A stretch of 64,000 nucleotides of DNA from Amoebophrya sp. A120 (GCA_905178155.1 CAJINV010000014.1:2077888-2141887); one strand, 5' to 3'. Counted from the stretch's first letter, positions 9,634 to 42,514 are shown. Numbers and translations: made by a program. Notes: a model not told the origin generated them from the sequence alone.

Positions 9634-11494
9634 TTGTTGATCTTGACCGGACTAATACTGAGCTTATTTCCACCGTGGCCCTGGGCTTCTTGTTTTTTGT
9701 ACCGAAATCTTTATCTACTTGTACTTCACACAAACAGTTCGACGACTTATTTCCTTTTTCGCGTGATATTGAAGTCAAGAGAAAATAGAGCAAGTAGACC
9801 TTTAGGCACCCATCTTTTCAGCCGGTCGATTTGTTCGACACCGACTGACCGGCGATCGAGAAAGAAGTTAATCGGAAGAGTCGTTTCTGTTCGATGCTCC
9901 ATCAAAAAGTGAAGGTTGATCACAAGAACAGAAAGAGAACTACAATATTTCGACCAATAACCACATTGAAAATCCCCCTGCTGTGATTGTAAGTATGCAA
10001 AACAAAACTGAAAATGCACACAAGCGGAATGCGTTTTTCGACCCTTTTTTCCAGCACAACGACCTCGCAAAACAAAGGTTACACCTTAGCTGCAGCTCCT
10101 GATTTTGTTTTCAAGAGAAATAAAGGATCGCCTCTTTGTAGCAACATATCTTCGACCTTTATCTTAGGGATCTCGCAGGACACGCCGGTAGCACTAGGTA
10201 GCACCTTTTATCTTTTTTTTTTTATTTTTCTTCTGCCACCCGATATGTGATCCTCCGCGACCTCAGAAAAAACAAAAAGAGGGCGAGAGTATGGAATACC
10301 AGGGCGCAACCCGAACAACCAGGTAGTCATCTTGGGTATGTGTTGAGAGTGAGAGTCACAGTTTTTGTCTGTTCCTCATCCTCTTGTCTTCCTGTTAGCA
10401 TCAAGTTCTGTATATAAGTCTTTTTTATTTTTCAAAGTTCATTCTTAGTGATAACGACGACAGACATGATCCCATCAAATACAAAATCTCTTTTTTTGGC
10501 CGCAAAATCGGTGGAGCTGCTTCTACCCCAGTAGAGGAAAGCAAGTTGTGCTTTTACTAGTCGTTTTCTTCTAGTATCGACGGCGACCATTTCTATGCAA
10601 GTCTGAAGTTAATGTTCATAGACAACTAGTAGACAAAGATATCATATATCAACTATGCGGACCACCATGATCCGCGAACTTATTGTCAACATCGTTGTGA
10701 ATGGTAGCAACAGAGGTGCCGTAGTTTGCTATTCTTACCGGCGTGAAACGGTCGATCATACGAAATCCGGATGAAGAGGTAGATCCAACAGGAGCCGGGC
10801 ATGAGTATTCAACATTCCAACCTTTTTGAAATTCGAGTGGTTAATCCAATACAGATACACCGCCCAAACGATAGACATCACGATAGCAGTCAAAGAAGAA
10901 ATTGCTCGCACACACGTTTATCCTAGAATCAACGCAATTGAGCTAAGGTCATATTTTTGATGTTGTAGTTACCTCAAAATCTTATCGAAGTCGGTGCGTT
11001 TTTTTGTTCATCTCAACACGAAAAATATCAGACAAGAAGGCTATTGCACAAAAAGGCACGAATGACGAGTATAGAAGCAGGCACGACAGCACAGGTGTGT
11101 GGAGACACAGTCGGACGGTCGGAGGACTTGATATTGAAAAAAACGCAAGCTTTTCTTCAAAAAACGGCGAAGGCGAACTTGAAGGGCACGTCACGTACTT
11201 TGGTTTCTTACCAGGCTTTGTGGTTTCAACTTTGTGGGGGAATGGAAAAATATTCTAGAAATTACGTATACATGAAGCTCAAGAAAGTTGTAGTTGTACT
11301 TGTACACATCGATTAAAACGGAAACGACATTACTAACAAGTTGAAGTTCTTTGGTTTAGTATCGTCATTTACTACACAGAGAGGAAGACAAAAAGCTGCG
11401 GTTAATGGTGTCTCCATCCGGAGCTGGACAATCTGTAATTCCAGTACTCGCAACGCGAGCACAGTCGCCCCTACCAGAAAGTTTCTTCTCCTCC

Positions 11495-14400
11495 TCACAA
11501 GCGCACGCTCCCCAGGCCCAAGAGCTCCGCGGCGCTTCTATCCAGTGCAAAAATTGTATCGCACTCCTCGTATAAATCGCAGTCATGCAGCAGGATGGCT
11601 TTCTAGCAAAAATCAGGACTTCTACAAATTTCTGGCAAGATCATTTGTATTGCAGTTTACACCAGTACGTAAGAACTTCTTTTGCAATGCATAGCTTCTC
11701 GGTGACAGCAACTTTTCCTCCTCTTGTTCGTCCTGCTCGACAAAATGGGCAGCGGCGGGAGAAGACGGTGACGCACCACGAACGTGTTGACCTGCACTAG
11801 TACTAGCAGGCGGTTGATCCAGTAGGCCGCTGCTCGTGCGGTTGCGGTTCGGCGTTGGGGTCCTTGCTGTACCACACAGATTATGCACTGCAAAAATATA
11901 ATCGCACTCGTGTAAATGCATTACAAATTTCCTCAGCGTGACAAATGAAATTTGTAATGCAAATTTGCCTTGGGAACAAGATTTGTAATGCAAGATTTGC
12001 ATTTATACGAGTACGATACTTTTGCACAGGATACAGATTCTCCAGTTTGGGCGAAGGAGACTGCTATCACACGGAAACAAGAGATGCTGACACAAAAGAA
12101 CAATCATGACCACAGTGGCATAATCCTAGAATCAAAAACTTTCTACAATAGAGCGTACGCAACGACCTCGTACTGTGGCTAAAATACACTCGAGATCGAG
12201 CCACACTAGAGAAGGGCACGTGCTAGAAGATGTCGTTGTCACCTACAAAATACGATTTTAGTTGGCTCAATTAGAACATGCCGATGCTCTGCTCCTCGAA
12301 ATCGAAATTTTCGTGAAAATAACTAAAACGCCATCCACCGTATCCGTAATGGTTTCTTCATATATTATAATCCGTTGTGTCTGTGCGATAGGCTCGACGT
12401 GTTGCTAAAGGTTGCCCTGGAGTCGTACGATTTTTCTCCCGTAGACGGGCGCTTTCTGTATGGAGCGCTCAACCAGAGTGGGGGCAAGTCTTTACATCAT
12501 CGCGAAGGGGAAGGTCGTGCCTGGTATGATTTGTGATGCAAAAAGGGATCAGAGAAGTCCAAACCAGAGTGCGCACAGCACGGCTTGGGTTTGTTGGGGT
12601 CGATACACAAAAGAAGTTTTCATTCGTACAATGCTTTGCAAATATGCATAATTCTTCATGCTAGTACATCAATCACAGTGACAGTACTAGAAGACTTTCC
12701 CTTATCATGCTTGTCGTGGCGATGCAGACCCTAGCAGCCCAACACAAAAAATCCAATATCGTTTTGAAAACTTTTCCACTCGCCCCCTGACACGGGCATA
12801 GCAGAACGCTAGAGCTGGCGCGACGTTCTTCGGAGCTTGTGCTCACAGCTCTTTCTTGCGTGCAGCTGCTGCCGCCATTGGTGTTTTTGTCGCCCCGTGC
12901 TGCTGGTGGAGGTGAGCGACGAGAGCCGTGACTCGTCGGATCCTTCGCAGGCGAGTTCTTTCCCTCTGAAGATGCCTGAAGAACCTGATGACGTCGATGA
13001 TCAGGAGTTCTCTCCTTCGGTCGCTGTAGTTGCTTCGCGGGAAGATGAACGGAACAGCCAGCGGAAGCCTCAGTCTTCAGCTGGTGGTCTACTTCATGCT
13101 GTTCTTGATGAGGCCGCGAAGGAAATAATTCTCGACGGTCGCGACGTTCTCGGTCTTTTATTTCCACACCAGTTATAATTTCTCGCTGGTGTCCCGCCGG
13201 AAATGAAAAAAGCCGCTCAACAGGATGACCTTGACCGTGCCCGCCGCTCGGTGGCACCACGATATGAATTGCAAAAGTATCGCAGTAAGTAGTAATTGCA
13301 GTACAAATTAGCTGAACATGACGAGGGAACTTGTCATCATGCGGGTTCACCATAAAAAAGGCATTTGCAATGCATGATTGCGATTACTACGAGTACGATA
13401 CTTTTGCACAGAATACACGACCAGCTGCTGCAAAACTTCGGACACTGATTTTCGCGCCGCCACGGCAATGTCGACCGGTGGTGGCGTCGACGATGATGGA
13501 GGATCTTCTAGCGACTGCCCTGTTGATACCTCTTCACTAGAGGCACTGGGACGCGTAGCACTCGCATGATTTTTACCAGGAGAAGAAAAATCCTGGTCGT
13601 GGCCTTCGACACATGCAGCGGCACGACCACTCGGAACTTCTTCCCCAGTCTTGCAGCGCCTTTCGTGGCGTAGTACTCGATCACTTTCACTGCGCGTGTG
13701 CTCAGAAGTAGTGTTGCTCGTCGCCGAGACTGCATCTAGCGTATAATCGCGTAACCTTGAGGATGGGGATGGCCCCGGCTGGTCCCCTTGTGCTTCCTGT
13801 AATTCCTTGGCGCCGTTTTCGCAGTGGTTACTCGTGGTTTCGTCCTGCAGCTCCTGTGCACATCGATATTCTGCTCCAGGATGAGAAGTTGAGTCAGGAG
13901 TAAGCGAAGCAAAAGAGCCTGGAGCTGCTGCGGGAGCGCCGTTTCTTCTGTTGTGTGCCCTAGTTATGCCGGTCGTGTGCGGGGGGTGACTAGGCTGGAC
14001 AAACCCCAAAGTGCTGCAGCGCTTTCTCCAAGTGCGGGAGTACGAGTTTGCTGCCACCGACCTACCATGAGGATGTTGACTGTGCGGAGAGATAAAAGTG
14101 CTAATCCTATTGGTCGTATAACCGCGCTTGCTTGTTCCATGGTGCAGCTGCGAGGGATCGGAATCGCTACCAGTTACAACATGATGACTGCAGTTGTCGT
14201 CCCCTTCGTGTGCGATCATTGCACCTGCTGATGACGACGAACTTGCAGCTATTGTGTCCGGTGTTCTTGAGCTCTTCCCCCAGGACACACGGGAGGACGT
14301 CGAGGTAAAGTTAGAGTTGCCCCCTTCCGGGGTGCTCGTCGCGTATGGTCCATCGTGTGCTGTTACCTGCGCCCTTGCACCAGAACCAGCACCAGAGCTC

Positions 14401-17400: not shown

Positions 17401-20400
17401 ACGAAAAGCAATCGTCGCCGCGCTTCGAATATGAAATGCAAAAGCATCGTACTCGTAGCAATAGCAGGCATGGATTACAAATCTAACTTTCTACCTTGTC
17501 CAGCATGACAAGTTGCATTTTTGTTCTTGGGGAAATTTGTGATGCGATCATTTACACTAGTACGATACTTTTGCAATGCATATCGAAATGCCCTTGGACT
17601 TCGTGGGATTCGGGTCGGCCCACAGCGAATCGAAAAAGATCCAGTCCATCACTGTCTGCGGGTGTTCCGGACACGTCCGCACGCGTTCCACCTTGTTCAG
17701 CTGCTTCAGGGTCACGTTCGGGCACCGAAACAGGCCCCCGTGGATGATCAGCAGCTTCTCCGACACGATGGTCGCGAGGGGCATCAAGTTGAAGGTCTTC
17801 TGAATCAGCTGGAAGACATCGTTGCCGTACTTTTTCCGGCACTCCTGGGCAAACCCACCGCCAATGGCCCGGTCCCGCTCGTTCATGTTGGCGTCCTCGT
17901 GGTTGCTATGAAAGTGCACAAGAGTTTACTCATCTACTTCTACCTCCTTTGTGCCACAGTTTAAGTCGGCCTTCAAAAGAAATTGTAGCGCTTGTCATGT
18001 TGATATTTTTCGGCGTGTCTGATTTTTGCTGTGATGATTTTATCAAGATCAGCTGCCATGCAGAATAAATTTGAATTCCATGTTGATCACTGCCCCCGGC
18101 GCGGCCTGTGTTGCTGTAGACAATGACCGGAAAGAACAGGGGCAAGAAAAAAAAAATAATTCTGTGCACTTTCATATTTCCCCCGGTTTACGTGAACCGA
18201 GTGCCTGTCGAATAGCTGATGCGCGTACATGAGCAGCAGAATCTCGGTGCCGAACATGCCCCGGTCAACCATGTCGCCGTTGAAAAAGTAAACGTTGGTG
18301 CTACTATGGAAGCGTCAGGACTGAAATCGTCAAAGTTGAGTGAATTTCTCATGCATAAATTGCAAGGCATGAAGTGCCTCTCTTGCAGGGATGGCAAGCG
18401 AGGCCGACTGTCAGCCTGTTTGGGGTCTGCGATGCAGCTGCTAAAGTAGCATGACAAAGGACGCCTTCTGTCCCTAAACAACATGAAAAACTGGATTTAG
18501 ACGCGCTTGAAATTTGTCATGCCCTGCTTGACAATTGGGCTTCCAACTGGTATCGACTTTATGCATTGCAAGTTATTTCACCTTTGTCGATTTCAATCCT
18601 GACACTCCCATAGCTACTCGGCCTGCCGTACTTGAAAAAAATCCACAGCAAATCCTCCAGCTGGCCGTGCGTGTCGTATCAAGTGCAACTGTATCGCACT
18701 CGTATTGCAATCATGCATTACAAATCTTCTTTTTTTAAGGTAAGTCCGCATTACAGATTCTATTTCTCATGCTGAGGAAATTTGTAATGCATTTATACGA
18801 GTACGATGCTTTTGCATTTGATATGTCGCCCACGATGACCATTCGGCCCTTTTTCGGCGGCTCTAGGAAGACGAGCGGCTGCCGGTATTGCTGCTTGTAC
18901 AGCTGGTGCACCTTGTAAATCAAGGTTTGCACAAATTTCAAGGGCAGCAACTCCTCGGGGTGCTGCTTGATACGCTCGGTCAGGTTGGAAAGCTGTTTCT
19001 CCGTGATGTTGTCAAAGTCGAAGTCAAACCCAAGGTCGGGCGCACTTTCCTCGTTGAAATGCGTGATCATGGGATGATTCGCAGTGGATAATTTACATGA
19101 TTTAGCGGTGCTTTTCGTGTCGGTTAACAACCGAAGATGTTCTTGTCCTGCAGGTCCTCCTGCGGAAGGTAGTACTACTGGCCCCCCCGAATGAACAAAA
19201 GCGGAGGCGGGTGGAACTACACTAGCGTTTTTGCCGTAAGTGCAGCTGCTCCCGGGAGGGTGATCAGGAGCAAGCAACTGTTGCTCCGCGGTACCCCCAG
19301 CGGTGGTGGACGAGGTCCTGTTACTTGTAATATTCAAATCCTGTGCAGCAGCCATCTGGGTCACCGCCGCGGGCTGCTCGCCTACCCTGGCAGCTTTCCT
19401 CCGTTGCAGAGAAGACCCAGTGTGTTCTCTCTGTGGAGCATTTGGTCGGGCTTGGACCCCTGCAGGATCCTGTATTTTCAAGCTTTGCTTCATCTGGAGG
19501 TTTCGCCGGTGATGAGTCATTTCTGCTCCGGACTGCAGCTGGTCAGGTATGGATGTGTCAGGTTTGAAATCGTCAGAGTTGAAAAAACTTGTAATGCACA
19601 AAATCGATGCCAGTTGCAAGCCCAATTTCTAAGCGGCGCATGACAAATTTGAGTAGAGCCGAAATCCAGTTTGTAATGCTGTTTGGGTAAGGAAGACGCC
19701 TTTTGTCATGCTGCTTTAGCAGCTCTATTCCTACCCCGCAACAGGCTCACAATCTGCCTCCCTTGCCTACTCTGCAAGGCAGGCATTTTCTGCGTTGCAT
19801 TTTATGCATCACAAATCATTTCAACTTTGACGATTTCAATCCTGACAGTTCCATATCAGGTCTTGTCTGAGTAGAAGAAGTAAACGGAAGCGGTCCAGAA
19901 CCCCCTGCCCCGCTCCGCGAAGACGACGAGGCTGCCGGAGCAGCCCTTGTTGCGGGCGAGTTAATACAAGAATCTCTTTTGCAGGATGGACTTTCCAGTA
20001 CGGAAGATGTGCTGCAGCTGTCCTCGTCCACTCCCGCCGCGTCTTGATCCGCATGGTAGGAACCATCCAAGGAAGTTGGAGCTCCTGCGACGGAAGATGA
20101 CGCACGGGGGCCGTAGTTCATTTGTAGATAAGATTCAATGGTCGCGACGGTCGTGGCTTCCTGCAAAAATTCCCTCTCTTCCTCCTCTTTATTCACTGCA
20201 AAAGTACTCGTGCGTGGGGTCGTGCTGCTAATTGCAAACAAGAATGATGAATCTATCTTCTTCTTGTCTGAATCGGCGTTACAAACTCCACCTGAAAAAT
20301 TTCATGCACTTACTGATTTTGTTCATTCTGTTGCTACACCTACCAGGTACGACACTTTTGCAAATGCAATGCATACTCCTCCAACCGCGCCCAAACGTCC

Positions 20401-26965: not shown

Positions 26966-29534
26966 CTACGCCATCACGGCCGCATTGTTGGACGCTGTGC
27001 CTCCTGGAATGATTTTGCTCACTAGATCTTTCGCCGAGCTTGCTGCGGAGGTCACAGCTCCTTTCGCCGCCGTCGCGGTCTCCCCGACCGCACTTCTCAC
27101 CTTACTGACGAAACCTTTCTTCTTCGCATCCGCCAGGTCATTGTCCATGTCGGCCACCCGCTGCACCATCTCTTCATAAGGCTCCTTGTAGATTTTCACC
27201 AGCCGGTCGTTTTTTCGGCGAAGCATGTCCACTTCGGCATGCAGGTCCTGCAGAGTCTCGATCGGGGCGGCCTGGTATTCTAGTGACAAAAGAACTACAA
27301 CGATGAACCACCTCCATGATATAAAAATGTAGTTATAAACGTCCTCACTCATCATGAAATTGCAGGCACGAATATGCTGAGACATCGGTCGTGGTTGCGC
27401 ATACTGTTGCATCTTGAGTCTATGTCTATCCTCGTCATAAGGGAACCGCACTACTCGTCAGATGAGAAGTGCACATATCAAATTTTTCTTCCATGATCAT
27501 TCTTGTCCTTCTTGTGCGTATGGTGCACTTCGTTGCGCGCGCGCTTCTATACCTAGTGCAGAGCCACGAAACATTGCATGGTGATTCTGTTTAAAGGTAA
27601 AGCATGAAGGTGTAGTTCGCACGTAGTTTATTTTTATTTCACCAAGCGTAGATGATTTGAATCCTGGCACAGGCACTGATTTCCGGCGTCCACGGCGTCT
27701 AAAGTGGCGTTCTGTGCGAGCGTCACCGCTTGCGAGGCCTTTGCGACCGCAAACTGCATCGCGATTGCCTGGTTTTTTTGTCAAGGTAGTTCAGTATTTC
27801 ACTCGAGTTGTATTAATTCGACGTCCATATGTTCTTCATGACGCAGAAAGAGCGCGACAATTGTGCAAAGCCAGAGCCAACATTGTTCTACTTTCATCAA
27901 GCAGGAGATGAAACCAAATCCATGAGATCATCCAAAGTTGTTCAAGTACCGCTTTCTTGATTCGACTTTGCGCTTCCTCGGACCAGTGTTCCGCGGACAT
28001 CGCGAACTCTTCGGGCGTATCAAATGCAAAAGTGTCTGGGTCTAGAAAAATACAAGTTTGTCATGCAGCTTTTCCATGACCCATAACGCCTGTAATGCAT
28101 GCCGTAGCATCGCAAATTTTTAGACGGCTTGCTGATGCCTACTCCGCATGAAAAATGCCCTCTCCGCGTAGCACAAAGTGGACTCCTCTTGCTGGTCATG
28201 CAACACAGATTTTTATTTTTTTGCAATTCAGAGATAGCGTCACAACTTGCAACCCTCCAGACCCAGACATATTTGCTCTTGATAGGGCGGTCCGTCCGGC
28301 GACCCGGTGTTCAAAAACGCGTTACTGTCCATTGCTCGTTGGTCGTTGCTCCGTATTTGCTGGTACTGGTTCCAGAGCCACACTATGGATGTGTCAGAGT
28401 TGAAATCGACAAAGTTGAAATAATTTGTCATGCATAAAACGGATGCCAGTTGGAACCCAGTTTTCAAGTGGCGCAAGACAAATTTCGGTGATCCCTAAAT
28501 CCACTTTGTCATGCTGTTTAGGCAAAGAAGAGCGAATTTCTCATGCTACTTTAGCAGCTCGAGCTGTAACCCTAAACAGGCTTACAATCGGCCTCACTTG
28601 CCTGCTCTGCAACACACGTGCCCCGGGTCATGCATTTTATGCATTACAAATTATTTCAACTTTGACGATTTCAAACCTGACGCTTCCATACACACCCGCA
28701 TCTGGTTATCCTCGATCTTGTTCAGCGACTGCATGCCCAAGACCCCCTTCAAAGCCTATCCTGTGCAAAAGTATCGTACTCGTAGTAATCGCATTCATGC
28801 ATTACAAATCTCCATCTTAACCTAAATCCGCATTACAAATTCCATTTTTCATGCTGAGGGAATTTGTCATGCGATTTATACTAGTACGATGCTTTTGCAT
28901 TTCATAAAGCCTGCGGCACGACGAAAAACGAGGTCCGCCTTCGTGTAGTTCTCGCGACTCGTATCTTCCGGCGCTGTCCCGTAGAGGCGTCCTGGTGGAT
29001 CATTGAGAGGAAGCTGGAAGTAGATGCGCTCTTCCCGTGTGCTGCTGAACTCCGTGCTGATAATTGAGAGCATGCCCCCAACGCCGGTCCTGTGTGACCT
29101 CCGCGTAATTCCCTCGTGGAACCACGCGCGCCAGGACCACGACCGCCACCGGCAGCTAGCAGTAATCCTCCTCCTGCAAAACTTTCATCTTCATTATCCC
29201 AGGGCCAGGAATAGTCCTTGGAAGATGTTGACCTCGTGGGCAATGCTGACCGCGGCAGATTGAATGCAGGTGCGCTTGAAAAAAAACAGGTCGAAGATTT
29301 ATTCGAGCGAGCGCTCAGTTGTCCTTCTGAAGGGGCCGCGCCGTGGCTGTCGCAATTCAGTCTGTATGAGCCGCCGTGTTCCTGCATGTCGTGCGATGAG
29401 AAGGCGCAACATCCTCGTCCTGCAGGCGAGCCGGTCAATGCAGGTGATCCGCCCCTTCTGACTCGAAGAGCCGTGGGACGAAACCCCTGCTCGATAAATT
29501 CTTGGATGTGTGGTGACTTCAATCCCACAGACAT
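26966..29534 (-). CDS. hypothetical multi-exon protein with coiled-coil-like C-terminus
   Basis: Removing three introners gives continuous QALKGVLGMQSLNKIEDNQMRVWLWNQYQQ...GPPEEFAMSAEHW; last exon AAPIETLQDLHAEVDMLRRKNDRL. Start and last intron uncertain. Confidence 0.6.
28018..28284. mobile_element. introner family B
   Basis: DR GGGCG; GTCTGGGTCT IR. Confidence 0.9.
28384..28690. mobile_element. introner family A
   Basis: DR CACAC; closely similar to 63085-63391. Confidence 0.9.
28757..28906. mobile_element. introner family C
   Basis: DR AAGCC; TATCCTGTGCAAAAGTATCGTACT IR. Confidence 0.9.
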
Positions 29535-31042
29535 TTTTCCTTGCAGCTGGGGTTAGGGTGCTCTGCAAAAAACCAGAATTTTTCTCAATTTGATCCAGCA
29601 GCTGGCGCCCGGACTAGGTGTTGACATTCAGAAGCTGCATTGCATTTATTTTCCGAGCTGCAGTTCTTGCACGAAGTATACGTCGCAACACGACGCTGCA
29701 CTAGCCGACTTGACGCCCTCACACCTCTCGTCGTGCGAGAGTAACGATTAGACAGCTCCTCCTATGGAGGTAACGACGATTCGCACACCTTGTATCAAGG
29801 CACGAGCAAGTCAAGCAGTATTGCTCTTTAGCACGAGAAAAACAATGAAAATGTGCATCTTGTTGTGCCCTAAGCGATAAGCTAAATCTATATGCAGCGT
29901 GAACATGTCATTTGTTGTTTTGGAAGGGATATTTTGAGCTCGTCCCGGGACCACGACGATCATCTTGGGCGAGGATCGATTCCCTGAGCGATGAATATCG
30001 TCGATATGTCCACCTCTACAAGCGGATCGAAAGGTCGTGAGCCAGCTCGCGTTGCGTCTCTCATGTCATCGACGTCTGATGTTAACTAAGAGAGACTCCA
30101 TCTTTGCATACACTATAAGTGACTACTTTCGAATTCGACGACCGGGACCGGACCACGAGGAAAATCATAATATGAACAGTTTCTCACATTTCACCAAAGG
30201 CAAGTCAACTCGTGCAGGAATTTCCTTTCTATCTCAGATATTCGGCGCCTGCTGGTAGCTCAGCGATCTTCGTCTTCGCAGTTGGAGGTTTTGTACCTGC
30301 AAGTACTACTATGCTATTCAACTCGTTTTTTGAGTAAACCACTCCGCTGCACTTGTCTGTAATTTTCACACATTCCGACGGGGCCCCCGCTGGTGATTTC
30401 TGACAAGTTGTCAACTTTTCTCACGATTCAATACAGGAATAGAGCGAGTGTCAGCAACTTGTGCGCACGATTTTTCCGGTCACTGAATCCGTTTCTAGTC
30501 CTCGTGAAAAACCACTAGCGAGGTTGTTGTCTTGCAAAACTAATACTGTTTCTGCAAAACTTCTTTCGCAGTATTTTCAGGGTGCGTCACGTTCTTACGG
30601 AAGATCGTTTCTCTTCGTCTTCATCACTTGAGCAAATGCTCACTGCTCACCACGCCCTACTAAACCATTTCTTGTTTTTGTACTTTGCGCATGTGTCGTA
30701 AAAACTGCGGGACCTTTCACCGCGTACTTAGTTGCTTGTCATCTCACCAAGTGGTCCAAGTCAATCTTTTCTGTTTCATTGTTCCCAACCGCCTGCACCT
30801 GCTACACACTGTCCGCAAGTAGATATCATAAAACCGCTACAATTATGTCGTTGTTCCTAGTCCAAACCAATCTAAAGAAGATGCCCTCTAAGAACGCACT
30901 TGATTAGACCAGAAAAACGGCCGAAGTACATGTTTGGCAGGAACACACTGGATAGGGGGGTGAAGTTAGTAAGTTGTTTTCTGGGGGAAGAACCCATATC
31001 CCCAGAATTCGGGTTTGTTTTTTCATATTTCTTTCTGCGTGT

Positions 31043-34000
31043 TCAAGCGTTTGAAAAAGCGTTTGCGTGGAGGTCCTGCCCTCTTTCAAATTTGAATGGG
31101 TTCAGATTTTCGGCTGCAGTGCCCCCATCGTCGATGTCCATCCTGCACGCACAGTGCAGCTTGGTGCGCTGGGGCACCCACCTCAAGATCCTCTCCCAGT
31201 TCAGGCGGTCGTCGTCGCTGCTGATGCCCACCGTGGTCGTCCACTCCGTCTGATTTTTGTTGGCGTCCGCTTTCTGGGAGGCTTGGGTGGGGGCGGCCGG
31301 CGGTTTCGCGACGAGCTGCGTGAGCCGCGTCCTGCACTTCTCCGGCGCGGCGCTGCATTGTCCGATAAATACTACCCCTATCTCGACGATTCCATTGAAA
31401 AATGTCCCCGTCCCACCCCCAAACAAAGACTTTCTATGTGCCTGCTGGCCGGTGGTCCGCCATCGGACGGCCCCGGAGGGGAAAATACATACGTCGCCGG
31501 GCGCCTAATATGCAAGACAAAGTTGGCCCCCAGGGAGGCGCCATGCGCCTATACAAAATCAAACCAGCTGCAAACCCGACGAGGGGCGGTCGGGGGTGTG
31601 GGGTGCAGGAACGTAGAACCAGCCCGCAGGCTTTTGCATGCATAGGAAGGTCGCCAGCTTGGGCGCAGGCACATAGAAACTGTTTTGGATTGGGGTTGCG
31701 ACGGGGACACTTCTCACTGGCATAACGTCGTCGCAGAACGTGCAAAAAACCCGCGCCAGCTCCCGCTCCGCGCGCGGCTTGACGAGGACACTGTGGGAGG
31801 ACTTGACCCGGGCAGCAACAATACCGGCGGCCGGCTCCGTTCCATTTGCAGCTGATCCAGTATTGATCGTGGGGCCCGGTTCGCGGCGCGGCGACCGCTC
31901 TCGCGTTGTGGCCGGGGCTTGTTGCGGCTGGACTGGCAGGGAGGGCTCGGAAAAGAAGATGTCGCGGTCAGTTGTTTCGAGTGGGTTCTCCTCGAGAACA
32001 AACATTTTCTCCCCCCGCCACAACTCCTCCAGGTCCTGGCGGCACTTCTTCTTCAGCCGGCCGGCAATGTCGCTGTAGGATGGGACGGCGGGTCGAAGTT
32101 GCGAAACAGGCACTGCAGAAGAGGCGGGACCGAGCAGAGTGCTGGCGGAGCTACTGCTGCTGCTGCTGCTACTGCTGCTGCCGGTGGGGGCAGTAGCACT
32201 GTCGGCGCCGCCGCGACTAAACTCATACGCCATGATGGTCACAAGCTCGCTGGTCGCGATGTGTTCGACTTCCAAAAACGTCCGGAAAGTGTGGTAGACC
32301 TCGGGCTGTTCGAAAAAAAGCACATTGTCGCGCACGAATCCGCGGTCGCAGCGCGCCGCATACCAGGTGTCGCCCAGCAGCGCGATCCGCGTGCGGCTGT
32401 TCTTGTGGTAGAACATCACCTCCCCGGACGGGGGTGCTGCTTCTTCTGCCGGGAAAATTTGGAAGCCGTATCGTTTTGAGGGATTGCTGCTGCTGCTACT
32501 GCTGCTCACGCCGCCGGGGGCCGCAAGCAGACTGCCGACCCCATTACCGATCCGGCCGCCACCGACGCTTGAAGAAGTCCCAGGAATCTCGGTCAGGCTC
32601 TGTCGCTGAACACAAACATAAAAGTCGCGCACACCGAGATACCAGTAGTACTGCCGCTGCTTTTTGTGCCAGAGCAGGATCGGACTTTGCTGTGCCAAGA
32701 CCAAGAGCTTGCCGCAGGATTTCGCGTAGGCCATGTGCTCCTCCAGGGGGGCCGAGAAGACAGTTGCTGGCGCAGGTTGCTGCTGCTGCTGAGTGAACTT
32801 CTGCTGCGGGAAGTTCGCGGCGGCGGCAAGGGCAAATGCCTGGACGAACGGCGCCGGCGACGCCGTTCCATGCAGAATCTCCTCCCGCAGGCGTGGCCAC
32901 TGCGGTAGCTGGATTTCGTCCTGCAAAATGTCCGCGCGCTGATTCCTCCTCGCCAATCCGTCAAACCGCGCCTTCAGCTCCTCGCGCTCCTCCGAACCAT
33001 TCGCGGCCAGGTCCGTTCCCCGCTCGTGCAACAAGTCGCCGTAGGTCTTGTTCATCAGGTCGCCGGAATCCCCGAGCTCACAAGGGGGGCGCGGCAGGAA
33101 CTTACTTCGCGGATAGTCATCTTTCCCTTCGCGGTCAAGTTTGTCGTGTCGGGTCGCCAAAGGAAGACGGGGGGCACCCGGTAGTATTTTTCCCTCTTGC
33201 ACTCCAATTGGAATTTCCCGGTGTGTCGCCGACAGATTCTTGACCCCCGCCCCATGAAAAGCGTCCTCCTGAAGCTTCTCGTCGCGCAAACTAGTCCGTA
33301 GGGCCCTCTGCAGGTAGGTTCTTGCTGCCGCTGGGACCGTAGACGCGCCGGCCGCTTTCGCCGCGTGCAAGTCGGAGTAAAGTTGTTGCATCACCAAAGG
33401 CGGTCGGAGCCGTTCGGGTATGCGTTCCACCGCCTTGTGCAGGTGGGAGCCGAGGGAGATGAGGTTGGCCTGAAGCTGTTGCTGGTGTTGCAGCTCCGGG
33501 TCGGTCTGCTGAAAGGCCGCAAAAGGGAGCAGTGTCGCGGATTCCCCGGCCCATACCGAGGCAGCAGAGAAGAAGTAGCACCGCAGTGCCTGCGCAAGGT
33601 CCTGCCCATCTACTTCCAGCGCGAGGGGGTTGGCCTCCTGCTTTACTACCGGCGTCTGCAACTTTTCCACGCTGCTCTGGATGAAGGACCAGTTGTTGGA
33701 TTTTTCGCTTGCCCTGCAGGAGATTTCTTGGTAGAACTCGAAGTACGGCGCCCAGGTGGTGACGGTCACGCGGATCGCCTTCGGCGTTACTCGGTTCAGA
33801 ATTTCGAGAACGTTGGCGATCTTTGTCCCCTTCTTTGCGCCCGTGGAAGCTAGCAGAAGGCGCAGCCCGTCATAGTTTTCGCCCACGTACTGCAGCATGT
33901 AGAGGATCCCACACCAACGGTATCCGGCCCCACTATATCGGGCGTTGATTACTTTCTCGCAAGCCTTGAAAGCTTCCTTGCTGCCCCCGGCGAACATGGA

Positions 34001-35225
34001 AGCCTCGTCAAAAAGCGCAAGATCCCGGCTGGCTACGCTGGCCCGCTGCTCCTGTGCGAGGCAATCCCGCAACCGCTCCAGGCCTTCGCGCAACGTCGTG
34101 ACCTGGTCCGGATTCGTTAACACATACTGTAGCTCCTTGTTCAAAAGTTTCAAGTCCCCCGAAATTGCAACGCTGTTATCGAGGCGGTGGAGTATTGGCG
34201 TCTGGATCATTAGTTTCGCAAGCTGGGATAAAAAGTAAGCCGCGCGGCGATTCCAGCTTGCTTGGTCTTGTAGGAACGTGATGGGCACGGTTGGGAGCAC
34301 GGCGCCGCCAGCAAATAACTCCCGCAAAGCGATTGGGGCGTAGCGGTTCACTTCGATCAAAAACAAATACGCCTGGCAGAGAGACGCGTAATTGTCGTCG
34401 TCGCGCTTTCGGGGTAGACCCGCGAAGGGCAGCGGCGTCCATATTTGCGTTGTTGGTGGGAGGTTGTGCGCCGTTGTCGTCGTCACGAGGTTCGGCCCTT
34501 GCAACTTTTGGAAGTTTTTCTGACTTTCGTCCGAGTTGTAACACAAACCAAGCAACTTCCCCTGGTGGTCGAGTTGCAAGCAGTCCCACTGCGCCTGGTC
34601 CACGGCATGCAAGATGCGGAGCCTGTCGGTGTTTGCGACACCGGCTGACCTGCAGACGGTCTCTGCTTTTTTGGCGACCTCGTACTCTGTCCCCTCGGCT
34701 TTTTGTTCCAGAACACTGGCGAGCCGGAGCAACTTGGTCTCGCCCCGCTGTCGCAGCTTGTATCGGTCGTATGGAGTAAGGCCTAACTTTTCAAATGCTG
34801 CGTCGTATTTCTCGTAGATGGTTGTCGTGGCACTTTCGCGCGTCTGTGGGTGGGTCGCGCGGTTTAGCTGAAATATCATCCAAGCTACCTGTTTTGAGTG
34901 TAGGCCCAAAATTGGAAAGAACAGATGACACGGCCAGGCTGTTTGAAACGAGTGCGCACGGCACGCCCCACGAACGAAGCACATCGGGATAGGCCGGGCC
35001 TGATCTAGGACAAGCCGGGCGGATGCAAAACAGAAAAAGGCCCCCCAAGAGGGCGGGGGGTCTTGAGGCTTTTGCTAATACCAGTTCCCGCCCCGAGGCG
35101 TCCGAAGCGCTCGGCGAAGGGTTTTCCAGGTTGGAGGCCGTCATTGCTTCCGCCCATATTGCCGGGGGAATGGATTTCGTCGCGGACCGCGGAAGCCATA
35201 TTTTGTTACAGTTGAGGCGCACCAT
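31043..35225 (-). CDS. divergent hAT-like DDE transposase (>1100 aa, probably with 5' and 3' introns)
   Basis: 1141-aa core ORF with LCYNSDES (putative D1), FLQDQASWN (putative D2), YRWCGILYMLQYVGENY (resembles hAT RW motif) and QEDAFH (putative E). Splicing 31384-31725 gives a C-terminal Cys cluster FCTFC..C..C. Superfamily assigned by eye. Confidence 0.65.
31388..31724. mobile_element. introner-like intron inside the transposase gene
   Basis: IR TGCCAGTGAGAAGTGTCCCCGTC / GACGGGGACATTTTTCAATGGA; eroded 5-bp DR; removal of element plus 5 nt is in frame. Confidence 0.7.
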
Positions 35226-36887
35226 AGCGCCCTCAGAAGACGAAAAGCTGACAGAAGGGTCGGCCCCCGATCACTGGGCGACGATATGGAAGGGCCGAAG
35301 GGTTCCCATGTTGCTCGCGCTTCATCGTTGGGCCCTTTTTTCTATTCATTTGCCGCAGAGCCGTACAAGTTTAAAGCCAGAAACCTCAAGCAGCTCGCGT
35401 GCGCACTTCGCTCTGTAGTATGCAGAAAGTCCCTCTGTTGTGGCGGCGCTAGTACACGAGCAGAACAGGCAGCGGGCGCGCGCGGGGGGCAGGCGAAGGC
35501 ATGGGACACCGGAGGGCCCACAGGACAGGGCATCGACCCCCCCCTCCGGGGGGGGGGCAAAAGGGGGGGCGATTTGGCATGAATTCTGCCGCTTTTTGGG
35601 GGGGGGGCAATTTTGGCCCTTCCCCCGATGCTACAGGGGGGGGGTAAAATGGGCCATTTTGTGGCCGAAAATACCCCCCCCCCCAAAAGGGGGAGGAATT
35701 CGTCGGAAAAAATGGCCCCGGCCGCCCCCCCATTCGAGGGGGGGGGCAAACAAGCCCGGCGGGCGCGGCCCTGATTTCGCGCGACGCGCGCAGGCCGCGC
35801 GCGGCAAGCGCCAGGCCCCCGGCGGGCGCAGGGCAGGGAATGTGCCCGGGGCTTTGCCTTCCGCCCCTGGCCCGGCTTGGGCGGCCGGCGGCCCAACGGG
35901 CCCATGCCGAGGCCAGGGCGGACAACCGGGCGCCCTGCGGCCCGCATCGGGCCAGAATGGCGCGCAAATTCACCAAAGCCCGGGCCTTGGCTCTATAGCG
36001 GGCCGAAAAATGGCCCCAGGCAGAAGAAAAATGCTAAAGGAGAGAAGCCAAACGGAAAGGGGTGGCCCCCCTCTGCGCGCTGCACAGCGAAAACCCAAGC
36101 GGGGCGCGCAAAAAAAGCGCGCCTGTTTTCCTTCAGACACGAGCCAACGCGGCACTTTTTGGGTCCGCGGGGGCCTCCGAACAAGGGAAAAACGAGCGTG
36201 CCACCGTGTCTGAAGAAGAACAGGCAGAGGCCCTGCAGGCCATCGAGGCCGGCCCGCGGCGCCTGTGCCTCTTTGGCGCGCCACTAGTGGCGCGCTTGGC
36301 CTTTTTCGCCCCGCCCCCAGGCGCCCCATAGGCCAGGGCAGCCCGGCGCATTTCCCGACCCCCGGAGAAATGCAAAAGTGGGCAGAAATACTGCCCGCGC
36401 GCGCCAGATCTCGAAAAGCGCCTCGGGCGCGGGGCCTATGCCCACCGGCGCCGTTTCCGGGTGAAACAGTGCCCCTCCCGTGCTCTGCCCCCCGTCCTAA
36501 CACTCTGAACGCGCTGCCCCCGCGTCAAGAAGCCGTATAGGGCGCAAGCATTTCTTTTCGAACCAACTGAAGGGCAACAGCTTATTTTTTCCAGTTCAAA
36601 AGACATTGACATTTTCCCGGCTTGATAAGTTTTTGGCAACGCGGAATCTTTGCCCGGATGCGATTCCGTCAACTGTGATCGGTCTGGTGCACATTACTGT
36701 TTTCCTCAGAGCTGACACCCGATGTGTGCCACAGACAGTTTGAAAAAATCACGAATGTATGAAGTTGTTGTTTGTATTGCTCAAAATATTTATCTACGAA
36801 ACCAAATTTGTGATGCGTGCTGTTGTCAAGTTTCTCGTTGCGCCTCCTCTACGGCTGAAGTAGAGGAGTCCTGTTTCGTCTAGACCT

Positions 36888-37841
36888 CTACTTCTCGTTC
36901 TCGGCATCATCGTCCGAGAAGTCGCCGCCATTCTCCTCCTCATCCTTGCCCCCGACATTGTTCTCTTTTTCCCAAGAGTCTTCCTCGCTCAGCGACTCCT
37001 GCATCATGTCCTCCATTTCCTGCTCATCCTGGTGCTTATCTTCCAGTGGGGCGGCCGCGGACGAAGAGCTGCTGCCTCCCCCCGTCCGGGAGCAAAAGCG
37101 CTTCAACTGCGGGGTCTGGGAGTTGTACGGGGAAAATCTAGACACAAGCATGTAGAAGCACTTAAGATTGTTTTATGCATGGCAGACGTTCTAAGTGCTG
37201 CGATTTTCGCATGACAAATGCAGGAAAAATAGTAAGCCTCATCAATACCGGGGCGCGCTCCTCTTTTTCCCGTTTCGCCGCCCCCATGGGGAGGCGGTCG
37301 CGGAGAAACTTGCACACCGCCGGAACGCGCTTGTCTTCGATGGGGTGGCACCGTTTCAGCTTCATGCGGTCCACCAGCTTCGCCTGGCCCTTTCTTTCGA
37401 TGTAAATTCTCGCCGCCTCCTTCGACTCCACCATTCCGCTGCCCGCGAGCAAATCGATGAAGGTCGGTTTGTGTTGCTCCATCGCCAGTTCGTCGTAATC
37501 TGTCATGCATTGAAGATGGTATTGAAGGGGGTGGGAAGATGTCGAATTTGTCATGCAGAATGCCAGAAGGTAGGCCCGAGGGTCCGCAGGTCATGCTCGT
37601 CATGCGGAAAAATTAAAAAAATACATTTCAAGTTGCTGGGAATTTCCTTCTTCAACTTCGTCGGCGCCATCACATACTCCTCGGAGGCCTTCTGCAGCAG
37701 GTCCTGGAAGGGCTTGATTTCCTTGTCGTCCTCCAAGCGAATGCGGTTGAGGACATTCTTCAGGTCCGCGAGGGAGGACGGCTCGAACACTTCCTTCACG
37801 GAAGTGGCGGCGCCCTTTTTGTTGCTGCCGGTCTTGGCCAT
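36888..37841 (-). CDS. unknown transposon-borne protein (K/E-rich, helical; 2 introns)
   Basis: MAKTGSNKKG... exon, GT-AG intron 37500-37624 joining to YDELAMEQHK..., second intron near 37140-37248; frame of last exon unresolved. Confidence 0.6.
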
Positions 37842-38934
37842 TTTGTAATCGGTGCGTAGTGCACGAAGTTAGCCACCTCAAAGAGAGTTAGCGGAAGGCG
37901 CAGACTGTTCTGCAAGGAGGAGATCCAAACTTTTTCGCGCCACGATACAAATCAGAGTTCTCGACGAAGCTAAACGATCCAAACCACGACGATGCGCTCA
38001 CACAAAACACAAAATCGCCGCACAAACACAGGCGGGAGTTCTTAAATTTGGTCCGCAGCCAGGTAGCAGAACGAACACAGATACTAGCAAAGCGGGCGGC
38101 AAGCTTCAGGGCTTGGCAATAACTGGCCGAGGCCGCTGGCTGCCATCGATCCTTAGCTGCGCGGGCGCCTGCACAGAAGCGGCCTACTCTGCTTCGGCTC
38201 TCAGGCGCGGGTGGTTGCGCGAGGGCCAGCCGGGCCTTCCACCGCCCGCCCGAAGCACCCTCGACCACCCCGAGGGGCGGTCGGGGGGCGGTCGGGGCCG
38301 ACAGGAGATTCGCAGCGGGAGGGCGCCAAGCAAGGCCCACGGGGCTCCCGGCCCCCCAAGCATGCCGGCAGGCGCACGAAGAGGCGACGGCGCGGCGCCT
38401 CCGCACCTGTAGAGGGGCGCGCGTTTTCGGGCGCACTTTTGCCAGGAGAGGCGCCGCGCGCGCGGTGCTTGCTGCAGTGCTTCGGCACCCCCGGCGGGGA
38501 CCGGCGCGCCGGGGGCAGGGCGACGGCGCGCGGGCCGGGCCTGGGGGCGAGGTCTGGGGCAGTCCGGGCTCGGCAAACCGGGCCGCCAAAACGCATCGGC
38601 AAGGGGCCGGGCCGAGAGCCAACACCGCCGGGCCCTGCCGCCGGCTGTAAGGCAGTGGGCACTGCATGCCCGCATCGCCGCGGCACAAGAACATCGGCCA
38701 GGCGCCGCAGACGCGGGCGCGGCTGCGAAGGACGGCGCACAACCCCGGGCGCGGGGCGGGGCAGGAGGGGCGGGGGGTTGGGATCTCAAGGCGCGGATAT
38801 TCCGCTTTCTATCGTGTGCCTCTGCTCATATACTACTTACAGCGTGCAATGCCTCAACTCTTTAAGAACACCCTGACAAAATTTTTTTACGCTAAGAAAC
38901 CACACGCGGCAATTGGATTCCACTAGCAGAGAAA

Positions 38935-39966
38935 ATGGCAACAGGCAAGGGCATCCGAGGCCAGGCGCGGGCCCTCACCGCCGAGGAGTTTGCCGCAATA
39001 TTCGAGAAACTCCCGACGCCTCACGACCTCGCTTGGCTACTCTCCTACGCACTAATGGCGCCGGCGGCGGAGGTGCTACAGCTCCAGCGGGAGGACTTTG
39101 AGTCACACCCGGGCGCCGTTCGCCTCGTCGGGCTTACCGGGAACAAACGGAAGCCGCGCATCGTCCCCATTGCCGGGGAGGTGGCTCGGGTGGTTGCGGA
39201 TGCTTTGGCGGGGCGGTACACCTACAAGAACACCACCTACAAAAAAGGGAAGGCGTTCGGCTTCGCTCCTGCCGGGCAGCCCGCCATTCCCCTCCGGCCT
39301 CAGTCATACCGCAACGCGCTTGCGGCGGCGCAATCGAACAGCGGCGGGGGAGCGCGGTTGGCGACGTCACACTCCGCAAAGAGGACCGGCATGACCCTGG
39401 CGGAACAGGCCGGCCACGCGGTACGCAAATGTCTTTGCTTTATTTTTGAGAGGCCCGCGCGCCTGGCGGGGCATAGCCGGCCCGGCAGCGCGGCCAGGCG
39501 CTGCGGCGGCACATATAGGAGGCGCAGGCAGCCCCGCGCCCGGGCTCTTGCTTGGCGCGGCGCCAAACAAGACCCCGCGGCGGCCACCGCCCCACAGCTT
39601 GGGAACCCGTGGCCCGCCGGGGTCCAATGTCATGCAGTAAGCGCGCGCGCGGAGCAAAAATCCTCCAAAACCACAAAACAGGGGCGCGACGTGCGGGGCG
39701 TTTCGGGGCACAAGACCGAAACCGAATACGCCAAATACATTCAAAGCGCCCGGGCGGGCGAAATTGCAGAAGACATCGCCGCCGACTTCCACGCGGGGCG
39801 CGCCGGCGGATGGCGGGACTGGGCCCGACCCCTCTCTCGGTGGCGGCGCAGTGCTGCGGCGCAGGCGGCGGGGGACGTGGCCTTGCTAATTTTGCTCCTC
39901 TTGGCGGGGGTACAAATCTGCCTCATTACCTGGCTGGCCGTGCTGCTCGGCCGCCTGCAACAATGA
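38935..39966 (+). CDS. tyrosine recombinase-fold protein with substituted catalytic Arg residues and C-terminal hydrophobic helix
   Basis: RALTAEE; box I LSYALMAPAAEVLQL; KRKPRIVPI; SHSAKRT; after in-frame GT-AG intron 39421-39681, VSGHKTETEYAKYI. Confidence 0.8.
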   Translation: MATGKGIRGQARALTAEEFAAIFEKLPTPHDLAWLLSYALMAPAAEVLQLQREDFESHPGAVRLVGLTGNKRKPRIVPIAGEVARVVADALAGRYTYKNTTYKKGKAFGFAPAGQPAIPLRPQSYRNALAAAQSNSGGGARLATSHSAKRTGMTLAEQAGHAVRKCLCFIFERPARLAGHSRPGSAARRCGGTYRRRRQPRARALAWRGAKQDPAAATAPQLGNPWPAGVQCHAVSARAEQKSSKTTKQGRDVRGVSGHKTETEYAKYIQSARAGEIAEDIAADFHAGRAGGWRDWARPLSRWRRSAAAQAAGDVALLILLLLAGVQICLITWLAVLLGRLQQ

Positions 39967-40510
39967 GGCGGGCACAGACAACAGGCGGAGCCAGCGCCCC
40001 CAGGCTGAGGAAGTGGCTGCCCGGGTTGCGGCGCGCGCGTGCGGAGGCGGCAGCGCAGTTCAATGTCGGTTCTGTAAAGGCGCAATACGAAACGGACGAA
40101 ACGAGTGGGATCCTGCAGAGGACCGAAGCCTCGGGACGAAAACAAAAACCATAACCGAGGTGCAGAAGCCGGCGTGTTATCGGTGTCGAATGCAAAATGA
40201 TTGGCCCCCTGTTGCGGAGGTGGTAGAGAGTGCGGCGGGATACGCGACGTGGCATCAATATAGTTGATGCCCCCAATTATCAACTATTTTGGGGCCCCCC
40301 CTTTGAAGGTGTTCTGCCAAACATGTACTTCGGCCGTTTTTCCGGTCTAACTTGATAAGCGGGAAGTCGCTATTCTATTGTCGTAGTCGTATGTCCTCGA
40401 GTGCCATTCGTTTTTCCGAATTACTGTGATTCTGTCGTGAGTCAAGAAGTATATCAGGAGTCTAAGTACCATGTAGCTCTAGCTGCAGCTCTTGCTCTAC
40501 AACTACTACA

Positions 40511-42514
40511 TCAAATAAAGTAGTCGGGCATGAGGCGGAGTTTTGGATTTGGAGCGTGCTGGGTCGCGCCCAAGGCGGAGGAACTCGTTGGCGACAGCGG
40601 CAAATCGCTCTTCCCTTCGAGCGGCTCGTTCTCGGGCGCGGCGTCAAACTGCAACACCGTGTACTTGAGGTGCTCGTCTATTTCCATCACCGCGCCGCGG
40701 TTGCCGCTATGGAACTGTCAGGATTGAAATTAACAAAGTTGAAATTATATTTTGTGATGCATAAAATCTATACCAGTTGGACCCACAGTTTCCAATCGGC
40801 GCATGAGAAATTTTCCTGGCCTCTGAAGCAAGTCTGTCATGCTGTTTAGGGAAAAATGGCTGCTCCCTGTCATGCTAGTCAGCAGCCCAACTCTTTCTCT
40901 TGACCCTTACCAGCGCTAGAATCTGCCTCCCTTGCGCCTTCAGCAATAGAGTCAGTCTTTGCGTCGCATTTTATGCATGGCAAATCATTTCAACTTTGTC
41001 GATTTCAACTCTGACACATCCATAGCCGCACCGGCCGCAGTAGTTCGGCGCGGAAAAGATCGTGAGCACGTTCCGCTCGTGGGCCCAGCTGTAGCCGTCC
41101 ATGACCAGTTGGTGCGCGCGGGCGATAAGTCGCAGGTTGTTCTGGTGGTTCCAGTTTTCCGAGACGTCCTGCCCGAAAATGAATCCCGCGCCCCGCGGAC
41201 TGATGCCCCACCCGGTGATTTCGTCCGGGTCCGACCAGAGGATGTCGCAGATCGGGCCCTCGTGCGGGACCTCGATAAACCGGTTCAGGTTTCGCAGGTC
41301 GTCCAGCGTTTCGATGCTCGGGGAGAGGCCGGCGTGCGGACAGAAGATCTGGTCCTCGATGAGCGCGGTGAGGGGGAGGGAATCAAACGCGTTCATGAAC
41401 GCGTTCCACACCGTGGGAGACCCGTAGGTGCGCATGCACTCGTCGAAAAACCCATACACCTGCGTCACTTGTCGGCTCTCGTGGTTGCCGCGTAGCAGGA
41501 AAACCATGTCCGGGAATCTGAAGGGGCAAGAGGTTTTCATTTTCTATCTTTTTCTTTCTGATTGCATCAATATACGCATGACAAGAAACGTCCTTCCTAG
41601 TAATCCGAAGCTCATCAACCAGCATGATGATTTTGCAAAGAAATGAAGCCTCTAGCATAAAAAAATGCGAAGAAGTGTGGTAGCTTGTCGGTCAAAAATA
41701 TACCTCATCTTGTAGAGAAACACCAACGTCGCCGTGAGCACGGAGTGGTAACCTCGATCTACGTAGTCGCCCAGGAATAAGAGTATCCAAAGAAAAAGAA
41801 TTTTACAGTTACAAATTGTTTGTGGCAGCATCAACACTGATGTCCCTGCATGGCAGAAAATAACACTGGGAACGCGGAGATCATGAGGGAAAACACGCAT
41901 GAAGCGAGGGCAGTATTAGTATAGCATTTGCTGCATGACATAGCGATAGCTATATTTGTCTTGCTTGCCACGCAACACAAGGTCGCGTAACTGTTTACAA
42001 TTTTTTCGCAGGATAAAGAGGTTTTGTTCCGGGGGTGCACCCTGGATCTTGAGCAGTTCCTTCAAATCCGTAAACTGGCCGTGGATGTCGCCGATCACCG
42101 AAATCGGGCATTTTACGGCGGCCACATTGGACTTATGCAATACAAAAGCAAGTACTTTGGACTATGTGTAAGTCGACACATGGAAAACAATTTATTTATC
42201 AGAAGTACAACGACTAACGTATGGATTTTTTCGCCGTGCGGATTTACCTTTACGTATAGAGAGAAAATAAATGCGTCATGCAATCAAACTAACATGCAAT
42301 TTCAAAGTACAAAGTACAACTTTTATCGCAGAGGATAGGACTCCTCGCGGAGCAGTTGCTCCGTTCGGGACACAATTTCTATCAGCTCTGGTTCCTTCAG
42401 CACCTGCATGCCGAGCACTTGCTCGATCTTCCCGTCAATGGTTGCCTGCTCGACCGTCGAGAGCCGACTGCTTTTCGGCTCCGCGGCCAGAAGCCGGGGC
42501 TCCAGAAGAACCAT
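40511..42514 (-). CDS. Ser/Thr protein phosphatase 2A-type catalytic subunit (4 introns)
   Basis: [64 protein letters not shown]-terminal PDYFI. Confidence 0.92.
40708..41024. mobile_element. introner family A
   Basis: DR GCCGC; restores RCG|NRG. Confidence 0.9.
41784..42015. mobile_element. introner-like intron
   Basis: TATCC...GGATA, DR AAGAG; restores NL|LFLGD. Confidence 0.85.
42134..42337. mobile_element. introner-like intron
   Basis: TATGC...GGATA, DR GGACT; restores EES|NV. Confidence 0.85.

Follow-up and report, generated by a model that had tools for sequence, protein, structure and literature searches.

The locus described here raises the question of whether one family of introners in Amoebophrya sp. 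A120 has a member that encodes the proteins by which the family moves. The window analysed was a stretch of 64,000 nucleotides from this organism (GCA_905178155.1, CAJINV010000014.1:2077888-2141887), read on one strand, and all positions given without a contig name are counted from its first letter. Positions 30904-40350 hold 9,447 bp of mobile DNA bounded by inverted ends and carrying three genes. This segment is almost certainly a genuine transposon of an introner family with terminal inverted repeats (TIRs) and a 5-bp target site duplication (TSD), and on balance it is read as the autonomous member of that family or as its last coding parent. Farhat et al. (2021, PMC7789003) described A120 introners that carry inverted repeats of 8-20 nt and direct repeats of 3-5 nt; they reported that no transposase was found in this organism and argued against spread driven by a transposase. 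Gozashti et al. (2025, PMC12130899) traced the A120 introners to diverse TIR, long terminal repeat (LTR) and non-LTR elements, with about 72% of all introner families left unclassified.

The left TIR occupies 30904-30940 on the plus strand (TTAGACCAGAAAAACGGCCGAAGTACATGTTTGGCAG; 37 nt), and its partner occupies 40314-40350 on the minus strand. The two arms lie 9.4 kb apart and match at 36 of 37 positions (97% complementarity), and the pairing reaches about 43 nt if one indel is allowed. The first-pass annotation of this DNA had reported intact TIRs of about 42 bp; the ends are indeed paired, over 37 nt at 97%, and a length of that order is reached with the indel. Directly outside the arms stand two copies of CTTGA, at 30899-30903 and 40351-40355, and the junction reads CTTGA/TTAGACC...GGTCTAA/CTTGA. 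The same letters can also be read as ACTTGAT/TAGACC...GGTCTA/ACTTGAT, which is the 7-bp duplication that had first been proposed. The other copies of the family decide between the two readings: a 5-bp duplication is perfect in 14 of 16 copies, including the one in the window, and the 7-bp reading fits the window copy alone. The TSD is therefore taken as 5 bp and the element as 30904-40350. To judge from the aligned copies, the 7-bp ACTTGAT is the 5-bp duplication together with the terminal T/A of the element and two flanking bases that match by coincidence. The duplicated sequences of the family vary (CTTGA, ATAAT, CAAAA, TGAAA, ATAAA, TTCAG, ATTTT and others) and are about 83% A+T.

With TIRs, a TSD of fixed length and many dispersed, near-identical copies, the element is a class II TIR transposon, and its family was named 'TTAGACC' after the termini. 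The first description of a TIR/TSD transposon with three genes is upheld, as is that of its GC-rich spacers: G+C is 56-68% in the interior of the element and 0.65-0.68 in the spacers, against about 0.46-0.51 in the flanks.

A pattern search of the genome for the TIR returned 19 sites, and the reversed-pattern control returned 0. A set of at least 15 elements, each about 1 kb long (981-1102 bp) and here called miniature inverted-repeat transposable elements (MITEs), shares the ends of the 9.4-kb element, and one truncated derivative is present on contig 12; within the assembly, only the 9.4-kb copy is full and codes for protein. Two pairs of MITEs are 99.9% (L024/L026) and 99.8% (L023/L027) identical over about 1,040 bp, and the 1-kb derivatives have evidently moved very recently. 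At three sites, long reading frames reopen when the MITE and one duplication are removed. The MITE L018 splits a homogentisate dioxygenase, the left flank matching HgmA_N positions 171-273 of 273 (E=4e-29) and the right flank resuming at HgmA_C position 8 (E=9e-53). L027 sits immediately before the GDxVDRG motif of a metallophosphatase, where Pfam Metallophos is matched by the downstream flank only (E=6e-4; 20.7 bits, the cut-off being 21.5), and L026 lies within a 300-codon open frame. At least two MITEs lie in conserved coding sequence, and because removal of the MITE and one duplication restores the frame there, these are considered to behave as non-canonical introners and must, as far as the reading frames tell, leave the mRNA in this way. 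For L027, the one MITE examined by hand in this respect, no GT-AG pair allows exact removal. The link to introners suggested in the first-pass annotation thus finds its footing in the 1-kb copies, which have the same ends and split conserved genes.

The family resembles the published introners of Amoebophrya (PMC7789003, PMC12130899) in its terminal inverted repeats, in direct repeats of 3-5 nt over the exon/intron boundaries, in non-canonical boundaries and in MITE-like copies within A120 coding exons; some A120 introner families have likewise been reported with autonomous and non-autonomous members. The element differs from the autonomous A120 example (PMC12130899), which carries integrase/Copia-Gypsy-like open reading frames (ORFs), whereas the genes here include a 1,215-aa orphan and a tyrosine-recombinase homolog without its catalytic arginines.

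The same MITE was also found at 12455-12700 of a public whole-genome shotgun or metagenome contig from a related Amoebophrya (JACKZZ010013399.1, L045), where it is 95-97% identical. The flanks of that copy are orthologous to contig 6 of the A120 assembly, G000 (C6:4074336-4076660), and are just 76-91% identical. This contrast between MITE and flanks may stem from activity that was recently shared, or from horizontal transfer of the TTAGACC family. The same contig carries, at about 10570-10730, a repeat some 150 bp long and very abundant, with more than 40 sites in G000, in copies that are roughly 90% identical; this is probably another introner family.

Besides its ends, the 9.4-kb element has an internal feature in common with the MITEs. 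A palindromic module of a G-run and a C-run, 165 nt long, lies at 35538-35700, the exact midpoint of the element; it stands at the exact centre of the MITEs as well, with 74-79% identity to their modules. It folds as a long hairpin (z = -3.3), and none of 200 shuffled sequences folded as well. A search of the element against Rfam gave no match. The spacer between this module and gene 2 contains a short dispersed repeat at 36111-36268 (element positions 5207-5364), with 13 genome matches of about 73-79% identity among those listed, and with a flanking 21-nt inverted repeat (36121-36141 and 36205-36225); it may be another small nested element.

The truncated derivative on contig 12 aligns to positions 1-460 (88%), 4204-4346 and 4690-4915 of the element. 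It is thus an element that lacks the body of gene 1, the large gene on the left, and keeps segments of both ends of that gene. Its TIR variant is identical to the TIR of the most recently active MITE subfamily, and the TIR of the window element is identical over its first 31 nt to those of two MITEs on contig 16. Elements bearing gene 1 therefore fall into two or more end-subtypes, and each of these has matching MITEs. It is mainly because of this pairing by TIR subtype that gene 1 is held to belong to the transposon and not to be a recent passenger.

Evidence on the movement of the 9.4-kb copy itself came from run X1, which has uneven depth and spliced contigs and behaves as RNA. In one X1 contig, 23 nt of the left flank are followed immediately by sequence from 40350 onward; this is an empty site with a single ACTTGAT, as had been predicted, and its source molecule may be DNA or RNA. 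The assembly contains the left flank only once, and 23 nt is the length to be expected of a k=31 bubble. A PPP phosphatase gene lies on the minus strand, and the element is situated about 620 bp beyond its stop codon, in a region covered by X1 contigs. The junction could therefore stem from DNA without the element, by excision or polymorphism, or from RNA from which the 9.4-kb element had been removed in the manner of an introner. Removal of the whole element at a GT-AG pair, tried by hand at every offset of the repeat, gave no fit. RNA-like X1 contigs also cover gene 2 and, in part, genes 1 and 3.

Gene 1 (gene model P0001, by tblastn on the window) is on the minus strand and encodes 1,215 aa in three exons. 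Exon 1 (35082-35225, 48 aa) begins with the ATG at 35225 and is followed by a GT-AG intron of 193 nt (34889-35081). Exon 2 (31727-34888, 1054 aa) forms the body of the protein and is single-copy in the genome. Intron 2 (31385-31726) is 342 nt long, with non-canonical GT..TC ends, a 2-nt boundary ambiguity and 42-nt inverted repeats, and looks like an introner nested in the large gene of the transposon. Exon 3 (31046-31384, 113 aa; stop codon at 31043-31045) is the part of which an 88%-identical remnant remains in the contig 12 derivative. Within the gene lies an intact ORF of 1141 codons (31559-34984, minus strand), and X1 contigs cover the 5' part of the gene (34500-35367). Gene 1 is a candidate for the transposase of the element by elimination, and by the need for an enzyme that cuts with a 5-bp stagger; we regard this assignment as tentative, with a likelihood somewhat short of even.

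A number of results weigh against this assignment and against the element as the parent of its family. Spliced genes were searched exon by exon; gene 1 was also compared with Pfam as a whole ORF, in thirds and as the full model, with E values up to 10, and no match was obtained. PHROG, NCBIfam, PADLOC, the sequences of the PDB and viral contigs likewise gave none, and a HMMER search of 1.84 billion representative proteins returned only gene 1 itself. With no homologs for an alignment, a single-sequence AlphaFold2 prediction had a mean predicted local distance difference test score (pLDDT) of 35.7 and was unusable. No recognisable transposase is present among the three genes, and the G+C content at third codon positions (GC3) of all three equals that of the neighbouring host gene. 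The assembly contains a single full copy of the family, and the MITEs have only the ends (about 31-58 nt) and the central module in common with it. Integrase-like enzymes commonly make TSDs of 4-6 bp and might for that reason act here in trans. TIR elements of an integrase-like kind have been described from A120 (PMC12130899). Orphan proteins are also common in Amoebophrya (Farhat 2021, PMC7789003), and for this reason orphan status in itself says little about gene 1. A lead to DUF3684/DUF8348, obtained from the ESM Atlas with part 745-925 of the protein (0.87, about 100 of 256 features), was weak, had no support from Pfam and was rejected; the whole protein gave nothing in the ESM Atlas.

The first-pass annotation had proposed a new composite class of transposon that pairs a hAT-superfamily DDE transposase with a tyrosine recombinase. 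The recombinase homology is real, as shown below, and the size of the large ORF fits a eukaryotic transposase. The set of 1.84 billion proteins is expected to hold many hAT transposases, yet no homolog of gene 1 was among them. Nor was any hAT dimerisation, BED or other hAT-linked domain found with E up to 10; PF05699 has no match over its cut-off anywhere in the genome and nothing at the locus, no PDB match was obtained, and the TSD is 5 bp and not the 8 bp of hAT elements. Of the large transposase-like gene of more than 1100 aa, the long ORF of 1141 codons stands, and nothing in these searches marks it as transposase-like; the hAT label is set aside, and the composite itself is considered very improbable.

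In a quite different explanation, the element is a non-autonomous carrier of cargo: a TTAGACC-type element would have taken up three host or foreign genes and would be moved in trans by an enzyme encoded elsewhere, for example by the integrase-like TIR elements of A120. Because their GC3 is host-like, genes 1-3 could be captured host genes. Such an origin would also suit the absence of a transposase signature from all three genes, and the spliceosomal introns and the nested introner inside them. Integrase-like ORFs are reported for the TIR introners of A120 (Gozashti 2025, PMC12130899), and the window itself contains an abundant introner family with the same TSD length and other ends. Its members are about 310 bp long, end in TATGGA...TCCATA, have 5-bp TSDs (TCAGG, CACAC, AGCTT) and lie at 19548-19855, 28384-28690, 63085-63391 and about 40708-41024; their ends are unrelated to TTAGACC, so that an enzyme with a 5-bp stagger need not be encoded in the 9.4-kb element. 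With both families at 5 bp, the mismatch of 7 against 5 bp that had been noted between the element and the introners does not exist. Against a cargo origin, no parental copy of gene 1 or gene 2 was found elsewhere in the genome, a search for paralogs of gene 1 with E up to 10 included. The contig 12 remnant, moreover, shows that gene 1 travelled with the ends across about 12% divergence and a change of TIR subtype, and the assembly holds no other coding element with TTAGACC ends. Capture with movement in trans is accordingly kept as a possible explanation of lesser weight. The PPP phosphatase gene has one of the TATGGA...TCCATA introners within its last coding ORF (40971-41540, minus strand).

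Gene 3 is the only gene of the element with homology to a family of DNA-rearranging enzymes. Its ORF of 343 codons (38935-39966, plus strand) and the neighbouring gene are divergently transcribed. Exon 1 (38935-39420, plus strand, 162 aa) is a homolog of the catalytic domain of tyrosine recombinases: it matches the PHROG integrase family phrog_1 with E=4.5e-11 (residues 10-160) and phrog_216 with E=9e-4, and it aligns collinearly, if weakly, with IntI, XerC, XerD, P2 Int and IntI4 (the last two from the PDB). Against the tyrosine-recombinase family of the genome itself, hhalign gave E=0.0018 for exon 1 and, for exon 2 against the family motif TGHxSxxTLxRYI, E=0.13. Pfam PF00589 does not reach the locus, and a word-index homolog search with exon 1 returned nothing. 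A GT-AG intron of 261 nt is predicted at 39421-39681 (plus strand); it is in frame and free of stop codons, so that the ORF reads through it. Its donor is kept in a paralog on contig 2, and splicing it out restores the 9-residue spacing before GH...Y seen in the family; no X1 RNA contig spans it. Exon 2 (39682-39966, plus strand) carries the motif GHKTETEYAKYI, which contains the His and the catalytic Tyr; a hydrophobic helix at the C terminus comes after it.

Within this homolog the GH...Y motif is retained with its Tyr, and both catalytic arginines are replaced, with Pro in the place of Arg I (LMAPAAE) and Lys in that of Arg II (SHSAKRT). The divergently transcribed gene with a tyrosine-recombinase fold that had been annotated is thus borne out by the PHROG integrase match, with both arginines substituted. 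The paralog of exon 1 on contig 2 (G000:C2:137631-138203; L016 5629-6093) has 155 codons without interruption, shares the splice donor of gene 3 and carries the same two substitutions; its ratio of nonsynonymous to synonymous divergence (dN/dS) against gene 3 is 0.20, with dS saturated. Because the arginine-less state is shared by this paralog at such a ratio, it is regarded as old and as kept by purifying selection. No recognisable exon 2 and no TTAGACC ends were found near the paralog, which is either left over from another element or a gene fragment kept on its own. To judge from its residues, the gene 3 protein has the homology of a recombinase fold but is unlikely to carry out recombination by the canonical mechanism.

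AlphaFold2 gave an overall pLDDT of 40 for the 343-aa ORF, which is unusable, with a helix at 293-342. The C-terminal part (39850-39966) forms in this model a strongly hydrophobic helix that resembles a membrane anchor, with pLDDT 85-98 over about 311-343; such a helix would be odd for a DNA enzyme. The genome also contains at least 12 canonical tyrosine-recombinase genes (PF00589 over its cut-off, loci L030-L040), among them C15:619668-620153, C12:1837999-1838445, C3:8613723-8614232 and C14:1640571-1641032. These are 44-52% identical to the first aligned member, have basic N-termini and keep the motifs TGRRGMDVR, SHTPRRS and GHxSxxTLxRYI. The 10 kb upstream of four of these loci have nothing in common with each other or with the element.

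Since gene 3 alone has homology to a DNA-rearranging enzyme, the recombinase homolog could itself be supposed to move the element, as in Cryptons. This is extremely improbable: tyrosine-recombinase transposition does not leave long TIRs and 5-bp TSDs of fixed length and variable sequence, and the protein has Pro at Arg I and Lys at Arg II.

A second scheme would combine gene 3 with gene 1 after the logic of Tn3 elements, by analogy and not by membership. Bacterial elements of the Tn4430 type have TIRs of about 38 nt, a 5-bp TSD, a transposase of about 1,000 aa, a resolvase gene of the tyrosine-recombinase family and an internal site that is retained in cis. In the element described here, a large transposase would act replicatively and leave the 5-bp TSD, the recombinase homolog and the central module would form the resolution system, and the MITEs would keep the ends and the resolution site. 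The TIRs of about 37 nt, the 5-bp TSDs, the protein of about 1,200 aa beside a recombinase-family gene and the internal palindromic module kept in MITEs are all consistent with such a scheme. The TIR sequence is, however, unrelated to that of the bacterial elements, no DDE_Tnp_Tn3 match was found in the ORF or in the genome with E up to 10, and the recombinase homolog, which has neither catalytic Arg, is probably catalytically dead. The empty site, if it is DNA, points to excision and not to replicative transposition. The Tn3-like scheme is thus judged improbable.

Closer precedents for the context of gene 3 are found among eukaryotic elements. Tec elements of Euplotes duplicate TA. Like the element in the window, Tec1 and Tec2 and MarCry-1 of Fusarium (PMC3212892) are bounded by TIRs, contain several genes and have a recombinase-family gene beside a larger gene, and their TSDs point to an enzyme other than the recombinase as the transposase (Kojima and Jurka 2011, PMC3212892). 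They differ in having a recognisable Tc1/mariner DDE transposase and, for MarCry-1, a TA duplication (PMC3212892). In the element described here, by contrast, the large gene codes for an unrecognisable protein, the duplication is 5 bp, and both arginines are missing from the recombinase homolog. DUF3504 and other domesticated Crypton domains (PMC3212892) offer a parallel for that loss: they are derived from tyrosine recombinases, have lost most of the R-H-R-Y tetrad, are conserved and have been proposed as a DNA-binding module. They are host genes outside transposons, in contrast to gene 3, which lies inside an apparently mobile element, and the proteins of the element gave no match to Pfam DUF3504. 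By analogy, then, Tec1/Tec2, MarCry-1 and the tetrad-less DUF3504 domains are the closest precedents for the setting of gene 3.

Gene 2 is located between the central module and gene 3. Its transcript (36519-38311, minus strand) has three exons, 38311-37625, 37499-37249 and 37115-36519, separated by two GT-AG introns at 37500-37624 and 37116-37248 (CT..AC on the plus strand), and was recovered in run X1 as a spliced contig of 1,535 nt at a depth of 22.8. Local translation of the joined exons gives a coding sequence from the ATG at 37841 to 36891, of about 231 aa and with an acidic tail. Family and homolog searches with each of its exons (Pfam, PHROG, NCBIfam, PADLOC) found none, and a word-index homolog search with exon 2 found nothing. 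The third, uncharacterised gene that had been proposed does exist, in the form of this spliced minus-strand transcript only; the other ORFs, at 35.3-36.5 kb and at 38.0-38.9 kb, have the look of noise in GC-rich sequence.

The family inserts into AT-rich target sites with a 5-bp staggered duplication; from established transposition chemistry, the variable sequence of the TSDs implies staggered cleavage rather than site-specific recombination. If the element is the coding parent of its family, as is favoured on balance, the orphan gene 1 protein would be the nuclease or strand transferase that recognises the ends of about 31-37 nt and cuts with a stagger of 5 bp. The recombinase homolog without its arginines would serve as a DNA-binding accessory or regulator and not as a recombinase; its site of action may be the palindromic module at the centre, which is kept in the MITEs together with the ends. 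In its fullest form, this reading would make gene 1 the founder of a transposase family without detectable relatives, which drives the 5-bp-TSD introners of A120 in partnership with a conserved, re-purposed recombinase-fold protein, and would have the 9.4-kb parent itself removed precisely from host transcripts; taken together, these claims are rather unlikely.

This locus gives a concrete candidate for the means by which the transposon-like, non-canonical introns of Amoebophrya spread. It supplies a single coding element that matches recently active introner MITEs by its ends, together with the parts required in cis, namely ends of about 31-37 nt and a central hairpin module. It also has three genes, each with RNA-like contigs. 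Two unrelated introner families share the 5-bp duplication. As a further example of its kind, a conserved tyrosine-recombinase fold that lacks the catalytic arginines is here carried by a mobile element.

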